Shown here piece after piece: positions 2,402-33,629 of a DNA stretch of 62,430 nucleotides. The notes under the pieces are model-generated. The model saw nothing but the letters and a program-made list of their open reading frames with translations, searched no databases and was not told where the DNA came from. Source of the DNA: Chara braunii (Eukaryota > Plantae > Charophyceae); contig BFEA01000008.1 in NCBI GenBank assembly GCA_003427395.1, positions 3,918,814 to 3,981,243 of the forward strand, read 5' to 3'. Each line of letters opens with the position of its first letter. The first letter of the stretch is position 1. The position numbers were made by a program, and so were the translations under genes.

Positions 2402-3010
2402 GAGAGAAAGGAGAGTCGAAAACGGCCGAGGCACGTTACGATAGATAAAAAAATGTCGAAGCAGTAAGGCGAATGCTCCCTACACGTTTCGGCTGTGTCG
2501 CCGGCACAGCCATCGTCAGGGGAGGTTTGTGCTACCTACTGTTGCCTCTATCTGGTTTAAGTAGTCATTCTCACATCCGGCATCGCCCGTGTTCTGGTGG
2601 TCGAACAACGTGTTTTCCCTGGAATCGTATCGCAGAGGAGAGAGCGAGAGAGAAAGAGGAAGAGTGAGGAGGGAGGAATGGCGGGAAAGAGAGAGAAATC
2701 GGGAGAGGGTTAGGAAAGGCACAGAAGTCAGATTGCAAAAAGAGCGGGAGTTGGGTAGTGGTTGGCATGTTGAAAAAGACGAACAGGAGGCGCGTGGGAG
2801 ATTGGTCAGAGATGGGATGGTGGAATGTAGAAGGGAGCTTACGCCGAGCCGAGGAGAAGATGATGTCATCGCACTATGGCAGAGCCAGGGGAATAGCCAA
2901 ACTCGGATTTCTTGGCGGATCTGGAGATGGGAAGCCGAATCCAAGAGCTTGTCAAAAAATCCGGTGCTGATTTGTCGTTACCTTGCGAATGAGAGGCGCG
3001 GCGGGGTGTC
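2402..3010 (-). repeat. 3' pseudo-LTR of the PLE
   Basis: Highly similar to 9024-9805 apart from a 171-bp deletion; no TG..CA termini, PBS or PPT. Confidence 0.88.
2476..2524 (-). ncRNA. Minimal type I hammerhead ribozyme motif (intact core)
   Basis: Minus strand reads CUCCC-CUGACGA-U-GGCUGUG-ccggcga-CACAGCC-GAAA-CGU-GUA-GGGAG: stem I CUCCC/GGGAG, core CUGANGA, 7-bp stem II, GAAA, short quasi-palindromic stem III, GUA cleavage triplet (predicted cut between 2481 and 2480). Confidence 0.88.
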
Positions 3011-3016
3011 CTTCCT

Positions 3017-6000
3017 CTAAAACGAAGGGTGCCTTCCCTCAAGGCCTTCAGTTAGGATCTGCACCCATCCTTTCCAGCAGTCCCTGTTATTCTGCGAAAA
3101 CTCTCCGGCAGCTTTGAAAAAGGCCTTCCCTGGGAACCCCTTAATTCGAAGTTCCCTCCTTAAGGAAAGCAGAAACAGACCCACCCCTCTGGAGTCTGAG
3201 GAGTGGGTTTGAGCCCTATTCATCTGGCATTTGATCAAACCTACTTTTTGGCTCTTGGGCCCATATGACCAAAAATCCTGTGTAGATAGGAAAACTATAC
3301 CTTCCTCAGTCCAAATGGTATCCTGGTTTTTAAGAGTGGCCTCACATCTGACAGCAGGTGGTGCTGCCTGGCATTCAACTTTGCATCCTAAAATTTGCCA
3401 TTCATCATCTCTAGCATCTGTTCGGCTCAGAGCTAGGTTGGAGTTGTAAATAGAGAGGAAACGTTGGTAAATATCAGGGTTGCCGAGCCCCGGCCCCGGG
3501 GCCCCGGCGGGGGTCCGGGGGTGGGCACCCCCAACCCCGGCTCCAGACCCCCACCCAAAAAAAAAAAATCAAAAAAAAAATCAAAAAAAAAATAAAAAAA
3601 TAGTGGGGGGTGCGCAGCGAGAGCACGCACCATATGGGCTAAACCCCAAAAATGGGGTTTTATGCCCCACCCCGGACCCCCCCNNNNNNNNNNNNNNNNN
3701 NNNNNNNNNNNNNNNNNNNNNNNNNNNNNNNNNNNNNNNNNNNNNNNNNNNNNNNNNNNNNNNNNNNNNNNNNNNNNNNNNNNNNNNNNNNNNNNNNNNN
3801 NNNNNNNNNNNNNNNNNNNNNNNNNNNNNNNNNNNNNNNNNNNNNNNNNNNNNNNNNNNNNNNNNNNNNNNNNNNNNNNNNNNNNNNNNNNNNNNNNNNN
3901 NNNNNNNNNNNNNNNNNNNNNNNNNNNNNNNNNNNNNNNNNNNNNNNNNNNNNNNNNNNNNNNNNNNNNNNNNNNNNNNNNNNNNNNNNNNNNNNNNNNN
4001 NNNNNNNNNNNNNNNNNNNNNNNNNNNNNNNNNNNNNNNNNNNNNNNNNNNNNNNNNNNNNNNNNNNNNNNNNNNNNNNNNNNNNNNNNNNNNNNNNNNN
4101 NNNNNNNNNNNNNNNNNNNNNNNNNNNNNNNNNNNNNNNNNNNNNNNNNNNNNNNNNNNNNNNNNNNNNNNNNNNNNNNNNNNNNNNNNNNNNNNNNNNN
4201 NNNNNNNNNNNNNNNNNNNNNNNNNNNNNNNNNNNNNNNNNNNNNNNNNNNNNNNNNNNNNNNNNNNNNNNNNNNNNNNNNNNNNNNNNNNNNNNNNNNN
4301 NNNNNNNNNNNNNNNNNNNNNNNNNNNNNNNNNNNNNNNNNNNNNNNNNNNNNNNNNNNNNNNNNNNNNNNNNNNNNNNNNNNNNNNNNNNNNNNNNNNN
4401 NNNNNNNNNNNNNNNNNNNNNNCCGAGGGTGAAATCCGTACCCCGGCTTGGGCCCCGGGGATCCCCGCGTGACAACCCTGGTAAATATCCCTAGCCTTGA
4501 GAATGGATAATCTAGAAGTATCGGGTAGGATGATGAAATGAGCGACGTCATCAATCAGTCTTAGTCCGTGAATAAGGCGTTTGTCCTTACCCAGGGATTT
4601 TAGGAAGGAGAATTCGTAGTAGACACATAGGAGACAAGCGAGAGCTGGACTAGACGTTTTCCCCATTGGAATGCCTATTTTTTGTCTAATGATGAGAGTC
4701 GATGCTTTAGAGAATGTATGGTAGAGATCAAACTCAGTAAAAGGAATAATGTCGGAGAATCTAACTCGACACCAACCTAGTTCACCGAAACCTTTACCAA
4801 ATGCAGTACTTTTCCCTGATTTATGAATTCTAATGGAATTGTGACCCTTTTCGGTAAAAAAATCACACAACCATTCAACCGCACAGATGATAGCATCGTG
4901 CGGAAGTTTGGTGAACATATCTTTGATATCGAAGCTTGCAGATAACAGTATGCCTTTGGGAAATTTATCTACCCTCTTGTTCAGAAGTTCTACATGGTTT
5001 TTAAGCAAGCTCGTACTTCTCGAATTAAAATGGCTGGACTCTGGGACCCTCCACAGGAGTCTGTTGATGGCCTTGGAAACAATCCTGCAGGCTCGTACAC
5101 TGGGCTCAGAAAAAGAAGGGGCGATTGGTCTCCATCTAGTCACGTCCTTATGCTTAGGTAGCCCGTAGACATAGCCCAACGAGCCTCGCCGGTTCCATGG
5201 GGCCAAGCGCTGCACCCGGATCAAGTGGAACGCTTCCCTATAAGAGTTCAATATTTCTTGTTCAGATCTCTTATCCACCTCAAAGCCCTCACTGTCCCAA
5301 TATAGCTTAGCTAGAGCCTCATGGTTAATAATTGAGCAGCAGACAAAGGAGTCGCCTATGTTATGGTCGATACGTAAAACGACCAAACCTCTTAGCTTAT
5401 CCTTCCATTCAATAGCGACGTCTTCCAAAACCGTATCACATGCATGGTTAGAAAAACAGGAAGAAATCATTTTGGAACTTCCCACCCAGTCATCGGGACT
5501 AGGAATGTGGGACAAGGCTTCCAACAAAACCCTTTTGATTCTTCCGATGGATTGGGCGGTAGACGGAGAAAGGATGTTCTTGGAATTAGACAAGGGTGGA
5601 GGGAGATGAAAGCAATGTGTCCATCGTTATTACGAGGAAAGAAAGTGTCGCTCCTTTCGCATGAACATAGATTACTGGATTGTTTGGCCATGATCCTATG
5701 GTTGTGCAGCAGATCAGCAACAAATTTGTTTTTAGACCAGACTATTATGAGTCGAGAAATCAGGAAATCAGCCATCAAATTGTCGGAACAGCGTCTCCGT
5801 ATGACTTGTTTTGCCAGGTCGGAGACTAAGGACTCTCGTACTCGATCATCAAAAATAACTTTCACCACAATCGGGGCCAAATAGCGGAACCCACATGCCG
5901 AAGTGAGTGCCCTTCCAACAACACCCTTCAGAATAGTGCGTGATTTCTCCCTATGAAACATCTCAATAGAATTATAGAGTTTAATCAGATGATGCAGGCT

Positions 6001-6934
6001 AGAATGGTGAAGACCAATCCTAGTTCTCGGGACCTGGAGTAGAGATGCTAGAATATTATGTCGTGGCCCGGTCAAGTTCTTCATTCGTCCCAACCTGATA
6101 ATGTAAAAAATCCCCCCTTTCTGAAAATCGTATTTCAGATCCTTCAACAGAAGTTTCTTATCATTAAATTCAATAATAGACCATCCAATCAACCTTTTGA
6201 TTTTTCCCCAGGAGTCAGAAAACAAAGTGTCACCGGTACTAAGTAAGTTCGCATGCACAAACCCATCATCCGAAAACTTGTTCAAAATTTTTGTGATGGA
6301 AAAGGATGGGAAAGAAGGAACCCATGGGTCAGGAAGGGGTAGAGATACGGGTGAGGTGTCCCAATGGACAAACTGATCATCATGCTTCCCTGTTTTCCTC
6401 AAAAACCCATTCCTGCGCAAAAAGACCTTTCTTTCCCTCTGCCCTTTGCGTTGGCGTGGAGTCCTCTTTTTCCTAACGCAGTTAAGTGCCGGAGACCATC
6501 TGGAAATCATAGAGTCTTCCACCTCTCTAATTTCGTCAATCGGTGGGAAGGCGATCGGAATCGCTACATAGCTGAACCAGCCTTTCCATTGAAACCATCG
6601 TCTAAGCTTATGGTTCCTACCATCGTTCGACTGTAGGGACCTTCTGACATGTTCATCCCATCTAACCTTCATGGGCTGAGTAGTGGAACCAATGTACGTA
6701 GCCTTGAACCATGGGTACTAATACGTACACAAAGGGACCATCCCATCCACAGACATCAACACCTTTACTCAGAGAACTCTCCCAATAATGGACAAACTTG
6801 TCAACCAACTGCAGTTGTCCGTGGCAAGTCAGTGTCAAAACAAGGAAACGCATGAGCAAATCGGTTCCCGCTGCCTTCGAGCCTTGCCACCCTTCATTTC
6901 GACGTGGCTTCCTTACTCGTTCAAGACAGATCAA
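3017..6934 (-). pseudogene. PLE ORF2: GIY-YIG endonuclease - CxC linker - reverse transcriptase (frameshifted, interrupted by a hAT insertion)
   Basis: GPFVYVLV / PWFKATYIGSTTQPMKVRWDEH...EVEDSMISRWSPALN (GIY-YIG, frameshift near 6715); NLCSCER..DGHI (CxC, ~5650); YGLPKHKDVTRWRPI, FDIKDMFTKLPH, RQKIGIPMGKTSSPALA, LRLIDDV (RT). Removing 3475-4480 plus one TSD restores KARDIYQRFLSIY...ELRIKGFP...HPSF* ending at 3017. Confidence 0.9.
3475..4480. mobile_element. hAT-type non-autonomous element inserted in the PLE RT (interior mostly gap)
   Basis: TIRs CAGGGTTGCC (3475) / GACAACCCTG (4480); perfect 8-bp TSD GTAAATAT at 3467-3474 and 4481-4488. Confidence 0.85.
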
Positions 6935-6958
6935 GGTAGAAGGCAGAAAGACAGAATA

Positions 6959-8671
6959 TCAGGAGGGATTCTCCTTTTGGGATTCCTCCTCAGATTGAAC
7001 GTCATCTTCATCTTCATATTCTCCGTAAGCATCAATGGCACGCAATCGGGCCAAAGCGGCTGAAGTGATCTTTTTGTTGACGTACTTGATCCGATCTTTT
7101 TTGCACAGCTCTTCGAGCTCATGCTTGGTTTTAGCCATGAGCTCAGTGACCAGGTCCTCGACGAACTTCTTCCTGCCCTCCTGATTGGGGCCTGCAACCG
7201 CAGCCTTCTTACCGCGGTTGATTCTATCAAGCCCCAAACCTAGAGTTCCTTCTTCGTTAATAGAGATACCAGATAACCTTCTCCTTTGCCTGCTACTGGC
7301 AATGGAAGCGAACATCCCGGCCATTCCTGCTGACAATCAGTTACCTGATGGGGTCTCAGATTGATCACCCCTCGTCCTGGATGGACCAGGTTCGGTAGCT
7401 GCGCACGCCCGTCGAGAGACAGGGGGGTGAGGTGCAGGAGGAGGAGGGGGAGGAGGAGGGGAGACAGGGGCAGAGGGTACAGGAGCGGGAGGTACAGGGG
7501 CGGGAAAGGAGGTGTGGGCCGCGGGTGGAGGGACCGTGGCTTGTGGGACTGGGTGATGATGAGGAGGGTTGAGACGTTGAGAAGTGGGTTGTGGCTGATG
7601 AGTGACTGGTGGGGGTGGGGGAGGTTCAGCAGCCGGAGGAGGAGGGGGATGGGGAGGTGGCGCTGCGTGCTGAGGAAGGGCAGTGTTAAGCATAGATAAG
7701 GCTGCACCCTGCTCCTTGATCGTTTTAAGGCAGCTGAGCATCTCCTTGAACAGTAGAGAATGTGCATCATGTGCTCTACGCACATTATCCAAATCCATCC
7801 GAAGCAGACCAGTGTCGAGAGGGGTAACCTCCTCCTCCACCCGCTGCCTGCCGACGGCCTGCTGATGGGGGGCAGGCGTGTTGCCAGTCATGGTCACTTG
7901 ATCCCCCTTCCTGTTATCAGTCACCTCACCAGTCTTACTCGTCTCCCCTTCTTTGGGAGCCTTATCGAATTTTTCCACCTTCTCCCTGTTTTTCTTGCTG
8001 GTATTACCCGCATCGCCTTGCTTCTTAACCTCTATCTCCTCGAATTGTTCTCTAACAAGACGAGCCATCCTGGCTTCACGATCCGCTTCTTTCTTATTCT
8101 CAGCCTCTACACGTCTCTCCTCTTCCTCGCCAGCGAGTCTCGCTTGTTCGTCTCTAATCCGGCGATCTTCTTCTTCACACCTGCGATCTCTCTCCTCCCT
8201 ACGATCGTTCCAAATTTCCCTCAAAATCATTGAGGCTTCGTTATCCGAGCCCACTTCCCTGGGCCTGTTCCATCCGCGTCCATTGGTCCCGATGGAAGCA
8301 TTACGAGGCGGTTGGTATGGTATAATCGCAGTCGAAGTTGATGGCGCAATCGGATTCGAATTCGCCGGTGCAGGTGCCTGAAGTAGTGGCGGTTGCGGTC
8401 CATGAGAAGGAGCAGGAGGAAGGAATGGCGGAGGAGGAAGTGGGAGGGGAGGAGCCGAGGGGAGCGGAGGGGCTGAAGAGAGGGGAGGGGTTGAAGGAGC
8501 ATGAGCAGCGTTATAGATGGGACGCCCTTGCACAAACCCACCATCCTGTCTAGAATGTGTGGCGCCATATCCATCATTGCGAGGGGGGTAGGGGCACCAA
8601 CGGGCGAAATGGCCATACAAACCGCAATTGTAACAGTTACGGTGCCCGCCACCTTGCCCTCCATCTGCCAT
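6959..8671 (-). CDS. PLE ORF1, Gag-like: N-terminal CCHC zinc knuckle, proline-rich tracts, charged coiled coil, C-terminal helical (SAP/HeH-like) segment; one in-frame TGA at 7337-7339
   Basis: CYNCGLYGHFARWC = CX2CX4HX4C; ORF 7337-8671 and ORF 6959-7336 are in the same frame separated by a single TGA; TKHELEELCKKDRIKY..KK..AALARL resembles a helix-extended-helix motif (inference). Confidence 0.75.
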
Positions 8672-9023
8672 GATTGAGAAAGCAAAGGATGAACCCGTGT
8701 GAATGGATTCTCCTTCCTCACACCTGGCTAATCACGTGCTAAGTAAGAAAGAAAGGAGGACAGTGCACAAGGAGAGAAAAATGGGATAAAGCAATCAAAG
8801 ATAGTAGAGCAAAAAAGGAGATAGCGATATGGATTGTCGTACAAGTTGCGCTGCTGATAGATGTCGAACACTTATTGGTCGCCGTATGCTCTTGATTGCC
8901 GCTTGGTTGACGTTGACCACCTGTTGATCGTCGTTGAAGTCCAGTCGATGATGTCCAGTCGAGATGACTAAACTAGCATATCCACCAAACCCGTGAATAG
9001 CACGGTGGTTAAGACGCTCATCC

Positions 9024-9805
9024 GAGAGAAAGGAGAGTCGAAAACGGCCGAGGGCACGTTACCGCCGACTCATAACTCCATAGGCTGGTGATAACCAGAT
9101 CGACGACAGGTATAAACCCAAACATGTCATATCCAACAGAGCACACCAAAGCAAAGAGGTAGAGGATAATGACGACAAGGAAGGAGGGAGGAAAGAAGAC
9201 ACAGTCGTAGCGCAAAAAAAAATGCTTCGTTACGATAGATAAAAAAATGTCGAAGCAGTAAGGCGAATGCTCCCTACATGTTTCGGCTGTGTCGCCGGCA
9301 CAGCCATCGTAAGGGGAGGTTTGCACTACCTACTGTTGCCTCTATATGGTTTAAGTAGTCAATCTCACACCCGGCATCACTCGTGTTCTGGTGGTCGAAC
9401 AACATGTTTTCCCTGGAATCGTATCGCAGAGGAGAGAGCGCGAGAGAAAGAGGAAGAGGGAGGAGGGAGGAAAGGCGGGAAAGGGAGAGAAAGAGGGAGA
9501 GGGTTAGGAAAGGTACAAAAGTCAGAGTGCAAAAAGAGCGGGAGTTGGGTAGTGGTTGGCATGTTGAAAAAGACGAACAGGAGGCGTGTGGGAGATTGGT
9601 TAGAGATGGGATGGTGGAACGTAGAAGGGAGCTTACGGCCGAGCTGAGGTAAAGATGATGTCATCGCACTATGGCAGAGCCAGGGGAATAGCCAAACTCG
9701 GATTTCTTGGCGGATCTGGAGATGGGAAGTCGAATCCAAGAGCTTGTCAAAAAATCTGGTGCCGATTTGTCGTTACCTTGCGAATGAGAGGCGCGGCGGG
9801 ATGTC
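9024..9805 (-). repeat. 5' pseudo-LTR of the PLE
   Basis: Direct repeat of 2402-3010, upstream of ORF1. Confidence 0.88.
9270..9318 (-). ncRNA. Hammerhead ribozyme motif, second copy (core mutated CUUACGA)
   Basis: CUCCC-CUUACGA-U-GGCUGUG-ccggcga-CACAGCC-GAAA-CAU-GUA-GGGAG; stem III is the perfect palindrome ACAUGU; core G5 changed to U. Confidence 0.8.
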
Positions 9806-9881
9806 TTTTTTTTTTTTCTTTTTTTTTTTTTCCTGTCGGTCGTGCCGCGCCGCGCCATGCCGTGCTGCGGCTGGAAAAAAA

Positions 9882-9896
9882 ATGTGTATAAGAGAC

Positions 9897-9898
<2 letters not shown>
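9882..9898 (+). other. Nextera/Tn5 mosaic-end adapter remnant (assembly artefact)
   Basis: ATGTGTATAAGAGACAG next to a gap. Confidence 0.9.
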
Positions 9899-9932
<34 letters not shown>

Positions 9933-10449
9933 NNNNNNNNNNNNNNNNNNNNNNNNNNNNNNNNNNNNNNNNNNNNNNNNNNNNNNNNNNNNNNNNNNNN
10001 NNNNNNNNNNNNNNATACATCTGGGCCATGGGCAATCTGGGGTGTGGTCGAGACATCTCGGCTGTGCCCAATCTGGGGTGTGGCCGAGACACCTTGGCCG
10101 TGGCCCGACCATGGGCCCGATACACCTTTTTTATTTTTTATTTTTATTTTTTTCAACGGCGGCACGGCGCGGCGCAGTGCAACCGACGGGAAAAAAAAAA
10201 AAAAAAAAAGACTTTTTTTTCTCCTTGCCGCCGGGGCGCGGCGCGGCGTGACCGACCTTAAAAAAAAAAAAAAAAAAAAAAAAGGACACAACCGCCTTGA
10301 TGAAACCTCCGCCCTGACACCACCGCCGACCTGCGTTACGAACGCCTTTTCAAACTCAGGCCCTGATACAGTCGCCGAAGGCCTGTTTTTGGTGCCTTTA
10401 GGAACTCAAAACATGCCGCGTCCGCCGTTGTTTCTTATTTTTAGTATTT

Positions 10450-22954: not shown

Positions 22955-23871
22955 NNNNNNNNNNNNNNNNNNNNNNNNNNNNNNNNNNNNNNNNNNNNNN
23001 NNNNNNNNNNNNNNNNNNNNNNNNNNNNNNNNNNNNNNNNNNNNNNNNNNNNNNNNNNNNNNNNNNNNNNNNNNNNNNNNNNNNNNNNNNNNNNNNNNNN
23101 NNNNNNNNNNNNNNNNNNNNNNNNNNNNNNNNNNNNNNNNNNNNNNNNNNNNNNNNNNNNNNNNNNNNNNNNNNNNNNNNNNNNNNNNNNNNNNNNNNNN
23201 NNNNNNNNNNNNNNNNNNNNNNNNNNNNNNNNNNNNNNNNNNNNNNNNNNNNNNNNNNNNNNNNNNNNNNNNNNNNNNNNNNNNNNNNNNNNNNNNNNNN
23301 NNNNNNNNNNNNNNNNNNNNNNNNNNNNNNNNNNNNNNNNNNNNNNNNNNNNNNNNNNNNNNNNNNNNNNNNNNNNNNNNNNNNNNNNNNNNNNNNNNNN
23401 NNNNNNNNNNNNNNNNNNNNNNNNNNNNNNNNNNNNNNNNNNNNNNNNNNNNNNNNNNNNNNNNNNNNNNNNNNNNNNNNNNNNNNNNNNNNNNNNNNNN
23501 NNNNNNNNNNNNNNNNNNNNNNNNNNNNNNNNNNNNNNNNNNNNNNNNNNNNNNNNNNNNNNNNNNNNNNNNNNNNNNNNNNNNNNNNNNNNNNNNNNAC
23601 ACACAAACACCCCAACCCCAGCCTGACGCCTTTTTCTCTTTATTTGTTTTCAATTCTTACATCTCAATTTTTTTAAAACACCCAATTTCTCCAAAAGTAT
23701 AGGACAACTCAGCGACCATGTCCCTCATGATAAAAAATGACCCAAAAAAAATCCTGCTTTTCTTTTTTTCTTTTTTATTTGTTTAAATCGATTTTTGTTT
23801 TTCATTTTTTAAAAATCTTACATGAAGTCCGATTCCAGAATAAAAAACATAGGATTGTAGGATTTTCCAAG

Positions 23872-23927
<56 letters not shown>

Positions 23928-24128
23928 CATATTTTTAGGGGTATAAAAAAAATATATTAAAAGAACAGGCCGTGGACAGGGCCTCATTGGCCGCGGCCTT
24001 TTTCGGCCGCGGCGGCCGAATTGCCAGCGGCGTAGGCCGCGGGTGTCACGTAGCTGGAGAGTACTAGTGATGGTTCAGAATGGCCGCATCTTGGCTGCCG
24101 GATCCTGAAAGGCAACAAACCGGCCCGG

Positions 24129-25080
24129 GTGTACTGCCAAGCTCTGCACAAGAACCAGGAGAACTTACTGGATGGGAAGGGTATTATTTTTCATAATCTA
24201 CAGAACTTCAATTCTTTTTGCAGTAAGAAGCAGAAAATTGCGGTTATTACATCCTTTTTTCATATGGCTTATGACATGGGCACATTGCCTGCGACGGAAG
24301 CTTCCTTTTTGTTTTCCCTGAAATTGGAACTGAGGGATCGTAGCTTTCCGAATATTTTCTTTGACAAGGCCCTCGTCAATTTTAATGTTAAGATTGGGCG
24401 GGCTGGACCCAGTGGGTCAATTGTTTCACCAGGGCCTGGGTCCCATAGGAAGAGTCGGACTCTCTTTTTTGGACTCACAGGTGCTTTTCGGTGGTTGGTT
24501 TTTGCTACGATGCAGGAACTCTGCTGTTACTACAGTCTTCACCCAAAATCAACCTTCCGTCATTATAGCTGTATTTGGGCCAACTTTGCATCTAGATACA
24601 GTGATAATGACCGTACGTTGTATTCCGGTGAAGACTGTAGGTATTATATAGGCATCTAAGTCTTTGTTCTTTACCAGCGCAACCGCTGAGGATGGCCAGT
24701 TTGCTGAGGGACCGGCCGAAACACGTGTAGGGTCATAGTCAGCTGGACTTCATGCATGGCGCTTGTGCCTATTTTTACCTGTCAGCTTTAATTTTTCGGC
24801 CTGACGCGCTCAGGGGACGGGGACTTTGCTTTCTTCTCGTCTACTTCTTTGCTTTCTATTTTTTCTTCTTCTTTTCTTCTTCTCTACACCTCTCCATCCC
24901 GCTTCTTATTTTGTTGCCTATGCTCCTTGTGCGCATGGTGTCTTGTTGCATGAGTTTTTTACTCCTCTGGGACTCGCATGTGACCCCTTTTGCCAGGATG
25001 GATGTGCCACAAAAAGGCGCGCTGGTACTTCCCCCCCAGCGTGTGGACAGCATGCCTGCTGGAACTGTGAATTTATAGCT
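24129..25080 (+). mobile_element. 5'-truncated fragment of a second PLE family: RT C-terminus plus 3' UTR/pseudo-LTR (right boundary approximate)
   Basis: YCQALHKNQENLLDGKGIIFHNLQNFNSFCSKKQKIAVI...FLFSLKLELRDRSFPNIFFDKAL aligns with RCEATLKNQDTIWTEEGIVFLSTQDFWSYGPKSQKVGLI...FLLSLRRELRIKGFPGKAFFKAA of ORF2 at 3017-3360. Confidence 0.75.
24674..24748 (+). ncRNA. Minimal type I hammerhead ribozyme motif in the second PLE fragment
   Basis: ACCG-CUGAGGA-U-GGCCaGUUU..GGACcGGCC-GAAA-CACGU-GUA-GGGU; stem III palindrome ACACGUGU; distal stem I CCAGC/GCUGG; predicted cut after 24729; one mismatch at the base of stem I. Confidence 0.8.
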
Positions 25081-28961: not shown

Positions 28962-29062
28962 GTCCTTCGGGACATCCGTTAAAATTGGAACGGTACAGAG
29001 AAGATTAGCATGGCCCCTACGCAAGGATGACACGCATGAATCGAGAAATGGTCCAATTTTTT
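28962..29062 (+). ncRNA. U6: U6 spliceosomal snRNA (plant type); gene or recent pseudogene
   Basis: GTCCTTCGGGAC 5' hairpin, ACAGAGAAG box, AGC triad, GGCCCCT.CGCAAGGATGAC ISL, TCGAGAAATGGTCCAA + T-run terminator; a few substitutions versus the plant consensus and no clear USE/TATA at canonical spacing. Confidence 0.88.
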
Positions 29063-32420: not shown

Positions 32421-32762
32421 AAAAAAAAAAAAAAAATTTGGCCCCGAAATAAAGTGAAAACAAAAAGTTAAAAGTGAAAAAAAAAAAAAAGTGAGTGGGC
32501 GAGCACGTTTTGACATCCCCATCTTTGACGATTTTAATGTTTTTTTGGCTTAGCAGAATGACTTCAACATTTATAGGCGTGTAGGCTACATCATAGAAAA
32601 CTCACAAAAAAACATTCAGAAAAAAAAACTTATTTTTAGGCCCCGAAATTTGTTTTCGCGGGGGCCGAACCTGGAGGTGTTCGGCCCCCGAACGGGACCC
32701 CGAATGCCCGAACGTTCGGGGGCCAGCCCGGACCCCCCCGAACGTTCGGTCAGAGAACCCTG
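32421..32762. mobile_element. Right end of a hAT-type non-autonomous element in a (TA)n tract
   Basis: Repeated ccgaac/gttcgg subterminal motifs ending in AACCCTG (same TIR start as 3475-4480) followed by (TA)n; (TA)n also precedes the gap at 31598. Confidence 0.55.
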
Positions 32763-33629
32763 TATATATATATATATATATATTTTAAAACCCCATATTC
32801 ACAAGAAGGAGTGATGGTAAGAGCATACACCCCTTCCTGATTCACGAAGAGTTCCAATCTATTGGTGAGGAGGAACACCTGTTGGAAAGCGGGTTCAACG
32901 TCCCCTTGAGTACAATAACATAACAGTAGCATTGATGGAAGATATATAATATTGGGTATTACTGGTGTTGGAATAGTCCGGGATCCGAGGATCCCTGCCT
33001 ATAGCCCACTGAAAGTCCCCCTCACACAGTCGATCGTTTTCAGTTTGACAGGGATATTCAGGATTTCTCATCTAAGTTCTTCCTTGAAGGGCGCTTTTAT
33101 AGCCATCTCCTGTTTCGTGGACACACATTGAAGCAAGGCCAAGGTCGACTCATGCAGTCGCGTGTGTATATCGCGACTCCGCTTTTTGGATCGTTGTCAT
33201 ACATGAGCGCGCGGATGAGCGAGAATGACTCGGATCTTGCCCTTTCGTGTCGGCGGGTCGGTGGTGAGCGGTCTTGTTGGCGTATCGATCCTATCCCGCA
33301 TGCATGCAACTACCCTTCTTTGCAGACATCGTCATTCCAGGTAAGATCCAGGCATTACATCCATATCAATACCATTGGGTAACGGACGAAAAGAAAAGGA
33401 GCAACCGCTCCGGCGTCGAGAACCAACACATCACAACATACGTCAGAATCAAAGGCTGACAATCGAACAAAACATGCACGATGAGCATATCCAACCAGAT
33501 CTGGAGTTGTCGTGCAGCGCAGATGGATACTAGGAAGTGAAGAAATTTGGATTATCACCACTAAGCAAAACAAAGAAAATGAGAAACTCAGGAGACCACT
33601 TGAGAAGGGGTGGGGGAAGGGCATAAGTT

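Follow-up and report, generated by a model that had tools for sequence, protein, structure and literature searches.

The DNA analysed here, referred to as the window, is a stretch of 62,430 nucleotides from the charophyte Chara braunii (GenBank assembly GCA_003427395.1, contig BFEA01000008.1, positions 3,918,814 to 3,981,243 of the forward strand). Near its beginning lies a Penelope-like element (PLE), which is encoded on the minus strand from 9808 to 2434 and which, as a comparison of repeats revealed, ends in two direct repeats, the pseudo-long terminal repeats (pseudo-LTRs). With high confidence, the element is regarded as an old, inactivated C. braunii PLE of the Chlamys type, belonging to the published 'Chlamys-2_cBra' type, as assigned from the published description, and carrying a PLE-type hammerhead ribozyme (HHR) in each pseudo-LTR.

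Anatomy and decay of the element

The two direct repeats, at 2434-3013 and 9228-9808, are about 580 nt long each and 94-95% identical, and the coding potential between them lies entirely on the minus strand. In the sense of the element, the domains follow one another as a gag-like first open reading frame (ORF1) of CCHC type, a GIY-YIG endonuclease (EN), a block rich in Lys and Arg, a CxC motif and a reverse transcriptase (RT). The repeat at 9228-9808 (minus strand) represents the 5', upstream pseudo-LTR, and that at 2434-3013 (minus strand) the 3', downstream one, which is the element's own 3' end. The 580-nt repeats start 37 nt beyond the end of the RT homology, and the 5' end of the unit adjoins the upstream repeat. 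The upstream pseudo-LTR represents what is left of a tandem copy truncated at its 5' end, namely its last 580 nt, and this layout traces the pseudo-LTRs to partial tandem insertion. After subtraction of a nested insertion, the unit measures about 5.8 kb, and the repeat spacing in related loci is 5.27-5.77 kb. A preliminary description, made from the letters of this DNA, had proposed direct pseudo-LTRs, the domain order GIY-YIG, CxC and RT, and a permuted PLE of the green lineage. All three proposals were borne out, by the repeats themselves, by minus-strand translation together with tblastn and alignment, and by the anatomy (EN before RT, CxC, pseudo-LTRs) along with the C. braunii relatives, respectively.

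ORF1 occupies 7337-8671 (minus strand) and ends in a UGA codon at 7339-7337. It carries a CCHC zinc knuckle close to its N-terminus, at about 8638-8591 (Pfam zf-CCHC, E=7e-4), followed by a charged, coiled-coil-like region, and both align with the N-terminus of P0009, a C. braunii protein that combines CCHC and GIY-YIG. Beyond this UGA, an in-frame stretch of 125 codons (6959-7336, minus strand) extends to a second UGA at 6961-6959. By tblastn, it is homologous to the linker between gag and EN in C. braunii PLE gene models, with residues 250-336 of P0013 and 222-283 of P0022 falling on 7303/7216-7025. ORF1, the 125-codon linker and the start of EN share one frame, in which the UGA codons (UGA-UUG-UCA and UGA-UAU-UCU) are the sole separators. 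The UGA at 7339-7337 may be the natural stop of ORF1; in this degenerate copy, the in-frame UGAs between ORF1 and EN are indistinguishable from decay.

The GIY-YIG core spans 6481-6733 (minus strand) and was recognised by three-frame translation and alignment from the series VYVL ... TYIGST ... RWDEH ... E ... LN. This segment aligns with C. braunii proteins whose matching part is Pfam PF01541. From VYVL to LN, the core is devoid of Cys, both in the window and in the aligned relatives, and holds no CCHH motif. With regard to the distinction between Chlamys and Naiad, the EN is without the CCHH zinc finger and without the CX2-5CxxC linker, as in Chlamys. The EN (6733-6481) is located N-terminal to the RT (5404-3050) on the same strand, and in the intact relative P0003 both are contained within one ORF. 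Between them, at 5617-5667 (minus strand), lies the CxC motif (LCSCE ... DGH), the Cys (C352) and His (H366) of which are invariant in an alignment of six sequences.

The RT is found in two parts on the minus strand. The first, at 4479-5404, includes the 'DK' motif PKHKD, motif A (FDIKD), motif B (GIPMGK) and motif C (IDDV). In tblastn it is 44% identical to residues 402-711 of P0003 (E=3e-81) and 41% identical to P0001, and the Pfam RVT_1 match is weak. The motif A Asp (FDIKD) and GIPMG are separated by 84 residues, a seemingly long spacing in the interval from RT3(A) to RT4(B) in which Chlamys elements would carry the insertion-in-fingers domain. The second part, at 3050-3475, comprises RT6/7 and the thumb, and is matched by tblastn to residues 273-413 of P0001, 708-848 of P0003 and 1141-1276 of P0013.

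The two parts are separated by a nested insertion at 3476-4478 (no strand assigned). The RT homology breaks at 4479 and picks up at 3475: residues 402-711 of P0003 correspond to 5404-4478 and residues 708-848 to 3475-3053, residues 708-711 aligning on either side of the insertion, and P0013 and P0001 show the same break and resumption by tblastn. An 11-bp target duplication, GATATTTACCA, is present at 4489-4479 and 3475-3465; both copies stand in one codon phase (D-I-Y-Q), and the RT continues in phase past the insertion. The ends of the insertion, GGGTTGTC ... and ... GGCAACCC, resemble terminal inverted repeats (GGGTTGYC...), and its content consists of GC-rich (CCCCGG)n-like and poly-T tracts with an assembly gap at 3684-4422. 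Because the break and resumption of the RT and the duplication bracket this gap, the gap lies within the nested insertion and no PLE sequence is hidden in it. The insertion is about 1 kb long, a length that is uncertain owing to the gap, and the length of the target site duplication suggests a Mutator-like element or a miniature inverted-repeat transposable element. A continuous 670-residue ORF called across the gap (3581-5593) was rejected, as the letters beside the gap belong to the GC-rich insertion and not to the RT; X translation of the gap creates the long frame artificially.

Further damage is distributed over the coding region. One frameshift, between about 6733 and 6714, splits the GIY strand from the remaining EN, and another, at about 5610-5665, leaves EN-CxC and RT in different frames. 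Together with the in-frame UGAs, the RT insertion, a G5U substitution in one of the ribozymes and the 5-6% divergence of the repeats, these features mark the copy, on its sequence, as old, inactivated and dead.

Directly upstream of the element in its minus-strand sense, the region 9808-10290 holds extended homopolymer runs of A or T along with repeats of 50-66 nt in inverted or direct orientation (CGGCACGGCGCGGCG ... poly-A), surrounding a small gap at 9933-10014. They may represent a target of insertion resembling a microsatellite, or a further small family of repeats.

Hammerhead motifs in the pseudo-LTRs

Each pseudo-LTR carries, on the sense strand of the element and about 45 nt ahead of the 3' end of the unit, a compact type I HHR motif. 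In the 3' pseudo-LTR it reads from 2524 to 2476 (minus strand) as CUCCC, the core CUGACGA, a single U, GGCUGUG and CACAGCC enclosing CCGGCGA, then GAAA, CGUGU and A, after which cleavage is predicted ahead of GGGAG. The open helix I has 5 bp and helix II 7 bp, and helix III is the self-complementary hexamer ACGUGU. The catalytic core (C3-A9 and G12-A14) is complete, with CUGACGA at 2519-2513 and GAAA at 2490-2487. The GGGAG that follows GUA pairs with CUCCC, helix I thus being built from the 5' and 3' ends of the motif, and U16.1 precedes A17 (at 2481), placing the predicted cleavage at 2481/2480. The motif of the 5' pseudo-LTR (9270-9318, minus strand) has a perfect palindrome, ACAUGU, as helix III and a predicted cleavage at 9275/9274; its core is broken by G5U at 9311 (CUUACGA). 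The preliminary description had announced, in the sense orientation, a minimal type I hammerhead whose short helix III is palindromic, intact at 2476-2524 and with G5U in 9270-9318, and its coordinates, core and substitution were all correct. The unpaired U between A9 and G10.1, i.e. the extra base after CUGANGA, was considered as a defect and rejected as such: any base may stand there, it occurs in all relatives, and it is a published hallmark of PLE hammerheads.

The motif is not a product of chance. By chance, 0.09 matches to the specific pattern are expected per window, and a relaxed descriptor matched six sites in 224 kb, shuffled sequence giving about 0.7; all six stand in repeats flanking PLE ORFs. 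For comparison, seven C. braunii loci that encode related PLE proteins (L001-L007) were inspected. Five of them (L001, L002, L004, L005 and L006) have the same design 3' of the RT and in sense orientation, and in L002, L005 and L006 it occupied both pseudo-LTRs, exactly at the pseudo-LTR spacing.

Altogether, 11 instances from seven families were compared. The core positions C3-A9 and G12-A14 are retained across the seven families, and H17 is never G. The base after A9 is unpaired in 11 of 11 instances and may be U, C, G or A, and the pair G10.1-C11.1 is kept in 10 of 11. The helices covary around this core: position 4 of helix I appears as U-A, A-U, G-C and C-G, position 2 of helix II as G-C, A-U and C-G, and its position 4 as U-A, C-G and U.G. 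Helix III is fully self-complementary in nine instances (CGUG, CAUG, CCGG, CGCG or CACGUG), with one mismatch in both copies of L006. Conservation of the core within the family, named at the outset as a check on the hammerhead proposal, was accordingly confirmed across seven families with compensatory helix changes, and such covariation provides comparative support for selection on the Chara ribozymes.

A second, divergent PLE 3' end occurs on the plus strand of the window. RT-thumb homology at 24054-24386 is followed about 300 nt on by a hammerhead at 24676-24740 (CUGAGGA-U-GGCC ... GGCC-GAAA-CACGUGU-A-GGGU), whose helix III is a palindrome of 8 nt and whose first helix I pair is a G.G mismatch. 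An assembly gap (22955-23598) lies upstream of this second end.

The abundance of the motif was assessed on genomic contigs from a 2018 DNA run, of which only those at least 85% alike were counted, a selection biased to conserved copies. Depth over the ribozyme at 2476-2524 was 170-307, and the flanks of the pseudo-LTR reached about 8 per copy, fitting two copies, so that coverage of the 49-nt ribozyme exceeds that of its surroundings roughly 20- to 40-fold. Some 16-20 of the contigs align over 2476-2524 only, losing similarity exactly at 2476/2477 and 2523/2524. Within the ribozyme, only two variants reached a level of 10%: T>G at 2481, equivalent to A17>C, and C>T at 2485, which on the minus strand is a G>A change and yields the perfect palindrome ACAUGU. 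Both are permitted by hammerhead rules, and the core is without variation at this level. The HHR-only contigs suggest a few dozen further ribozyme copies in other elements. The excess could come from sister PLE families, or from non-autonomous, retrozyme-like derivatives that keep the ribozyme-bearing tail alone. Tentatively, and with a rather low probability, the extra copies may be HHR-only retrozyme-like derivatives mobilised by the N-terminal-EN PLEs, or ribozyme modules swapped between PLE families. Neither such derivatives nor module exchange is known to have been characterised for the Chlamys clade, and the possible HHR-only population would be worth a genome-wide census.

These contigs also bear on a different explanation, namely that the hammerhead belongs not to the PLE but to a ribozyme module mobile in its own right (a retrozyme-like element or a non-coding HHR retroelement), which parasitises PLE tails or recombines into them and would tell little of PLE RNA processing. 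The divergence of flanks at the very edges of the ribozyme and the contrast in depth (170-307 versus about 8 per copy) speak for such a module, and Craig et al. themselves float the thought that 'HHRs simply parasitize PLEs' (PMC8557442). Nonetheless, every hammerhead in the related loci lies on the sense strand, 3' of the RT and within the pseudo-LTR, and each of the seven families has an HHR sequence of its own, with compensatory changes among them, a pattern that fits vertical co-evolution with the element. Moreover, non-autonomous derivatives keeping the PLE tail alone would yield the same depth pattern. An independent module is therefore considered improbable.

Proposed processing of the element RNA

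Self-cleavage that releases unit-length RNA is plausible, given the conservation of the ribozyme, for an element of this design. Read-through transcription of the tandem arrangement would produce an RNA with two ribozymes, one close to either end of a unit. Since helix III would be unable to close in a single motif, a 6-nt palindrome leaving no room for a loop, two motifs would pair as a double hammerhead. The partners could come from a single transcript, as its 5' and 3' copies, or from two transcripts, and each catalytic core would cut the other's site, after H17. The released RNA would extend from G1.1 in the upstream repeat, with 45 nt remaining to the 3' end of the unit, to H17 in the downstream repeat, with 5'-OH and 2',3'-cyclic-phosphate ends, and would be copied by target-primed reverse transcription from a nick introduced by the GIY-YIG endonuclease. 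One of the two active sites would be knocked out in the present copy by the G5U of its upstream core. With its frameshifts, UGAs, insertion of about 1 kb, G5U and divergent repeats, this copy is no longer able to run the proposed cycle.

When the double-hammerhead pairing was imposed, its energy amounted to -38.8 to -42.6 kcal/mol versus -35.6 kcal/mol for two monomers folded in helices I and II only, so that the paired form is favoured by 3-7 kcal/mol. Free RNAcofold prediction of the two HHR copies returned a trivial full duplex, which is uninformative, and only the imposed-pairing energy was used.

Several observations weigh against a working PLE hammerhead or against the assignment to Chlamys-2_cBra. 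Rfam cmscan reported no hammerhead family, neither over the whole window at the gathering score nor, with the threshold relaxed to E<=10, in either repeat. Among the seven related loci, L003 and L007 were without an HHR. In three oligo-dT RNA-seq runs, the pseudo-LTR received no reads except spurious ones at a GA microsatellite (2627-2680), and no pile-ups of read starts or ends were found on it. Of each run, 6-13% was read, and cleaved RNA is without poly(A); hence these results give no evidence that the family is silent. PLE hammerheads are also known for low cleavage in vitro, even as dimers (PMC4209133). Finally, the comparison with Chlamys-2_cBra was made by published description.

Some of these points would suit a catalytically inert look-alike, that is, a structured pseudo-LTR RNA with another role such as RT binding or a dimerisation signal. 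The missing Rfam match, a helix III beyond the reach of the monomer, the low activity of PLE hammerheads in vitro and the lack of cleavage ends in the RNA-seq reads would all be expected of it. Against this, C3-A9, G12-A14, G10.1-C11.1 and H17 are kept over seven families while the helices covary, a pattern specific to hammerhead catalysis. Where the motifs depart from the Rfam models, they do so in the published hallmarks of PLE hammerheads (PMC4209133), and we attribute the Rfam miss to the bulged base and the minimal helix III. An inert look-alike is thus regarded as highly unlikely, and a PLE-type ribozyme remains the preferred reading.

Family identity and other features of the window

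The named relatives, 26 in all, are without exception C. braunii proteins (20 sampled of the 126 HMMER matches to the EN-CxC piece, plus the RT matches), and beyond them the searches yielded one JGI protein with GIY-YIG. DNA runs in which this stretch is present date from 2018. Several of the C. braunii gene models fuse CCHC with GIY-YIG, EN with CxC and RT, or CCHC, GIY-YIG and RT. The closest annotated relatives share 33-44% protein identity with the element. Because no relative among the matches exceeds 44%, the element's own family is not among the annotated proteins; it probably constitutes a distinct family within the Chlamys-2_cBra type.

The Naiad/Chlamys clade was defined by Craig et al. 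(2021, Mol Biol Evol 38:5005; PMC8557442), who stated that its members 'lack canonical hammerhead ribozyme motifs', 'with two notable exceptions'. The exception in C. braunii is Chlamys-2_cBra, which has both a zf-CCHC ORF of gag-like type and, at its 3' end, a canonical HHR; a third type, the EN- PLE-X families, likewise carries HHRs. The same work describes Chlamys at 'very high copy numbers' in C. braunii. The general statement was given correctly in the preliminary description, but the exceptions, Chlamys-2_cBra among them, had escaped it, and the check corrects the premise that every Naiad/Chlamys element is HHR-free. The novelty claimed for a hammerhead in a permuted PLE is refuted: it was published for C. 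braunii in 2021 (PMC8557442), and prior publication was what the preliminary description itself had named as decisive against the claim. In a full-text literature search for hammerhead and Chara braunii, this paper was the sole match. The combination of a permuted PLE, a gag-like ORF and a hammerhead is already known, and the extra U and palindromic helix III are the PLE-HHR signature.

The element resembles Chlamys-2_cBra (PMC8557442) in its C. braunii host, an upstream gag-like zf-CCHC ORF, an N-terminal GIY-YIG without CCHH, CxC, RT, pseudo-LTRs and a sense-strand 3' HHR, and its unit of about 5.8 kb falls within the published 3.3-8.2 kb. It additionally shares the DK motif and CxC with Chlamys; it departs from the published type in the degenerate state of the present copy. 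As for the ribozyme, Cervera & de la Pena (2014; PMC4209133) gave as hallmarks of PLE hammerheads a nucleotide between 9 and 10.1, the pair G10.1-C11.1 and a palindromic 15.2-16.2. The Chara motifs agree with those of canonical, C-terminal-EN PLEs (PMC4209133) in being of type I, in occupying both pseudo-LTRs, in the unpaired nucleotide between A9 and G10.1, in G10.1-C11.1, in a long helix II of 6-7 bp and in a short palindromic helix III that implies dimeric action. The differences are that the Chara carrier has its EN before the RT, and that its helix III is a perfect or wobble palindrome of 6-8 nt, in contrast to a stem of 1-2 bp with a loop. Animal non-LTR retrozymes, or HHR-bearing non-autonomous PLE derivatives (PMC7229834; bioRxiv 10.64898/2026.07.22.740005), likewise possess a dimeric type I HHR and offer a possible explanation of the excess HHR-only genomic copies. 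Unlike them, the Chara element is autonomous in design (gag, EN and RT) and is known here without a tandem HHR array or circular RNA.

Elsewhere in the window, a U6 spliceosomal snRNA gene is located at 28962-29062 on the plus strand (Rfam RF00026, 97.5 bits), and a U6-like stretch, 90% identical, occurs in C. braunii locus L003 at 581-673. Dispersed repeats are common to the window and the C. braunii loci at 89-93% identity, including a 340-bp repeat at 32441-32779 that is 93% identical to positions 7846-8184 of L007.

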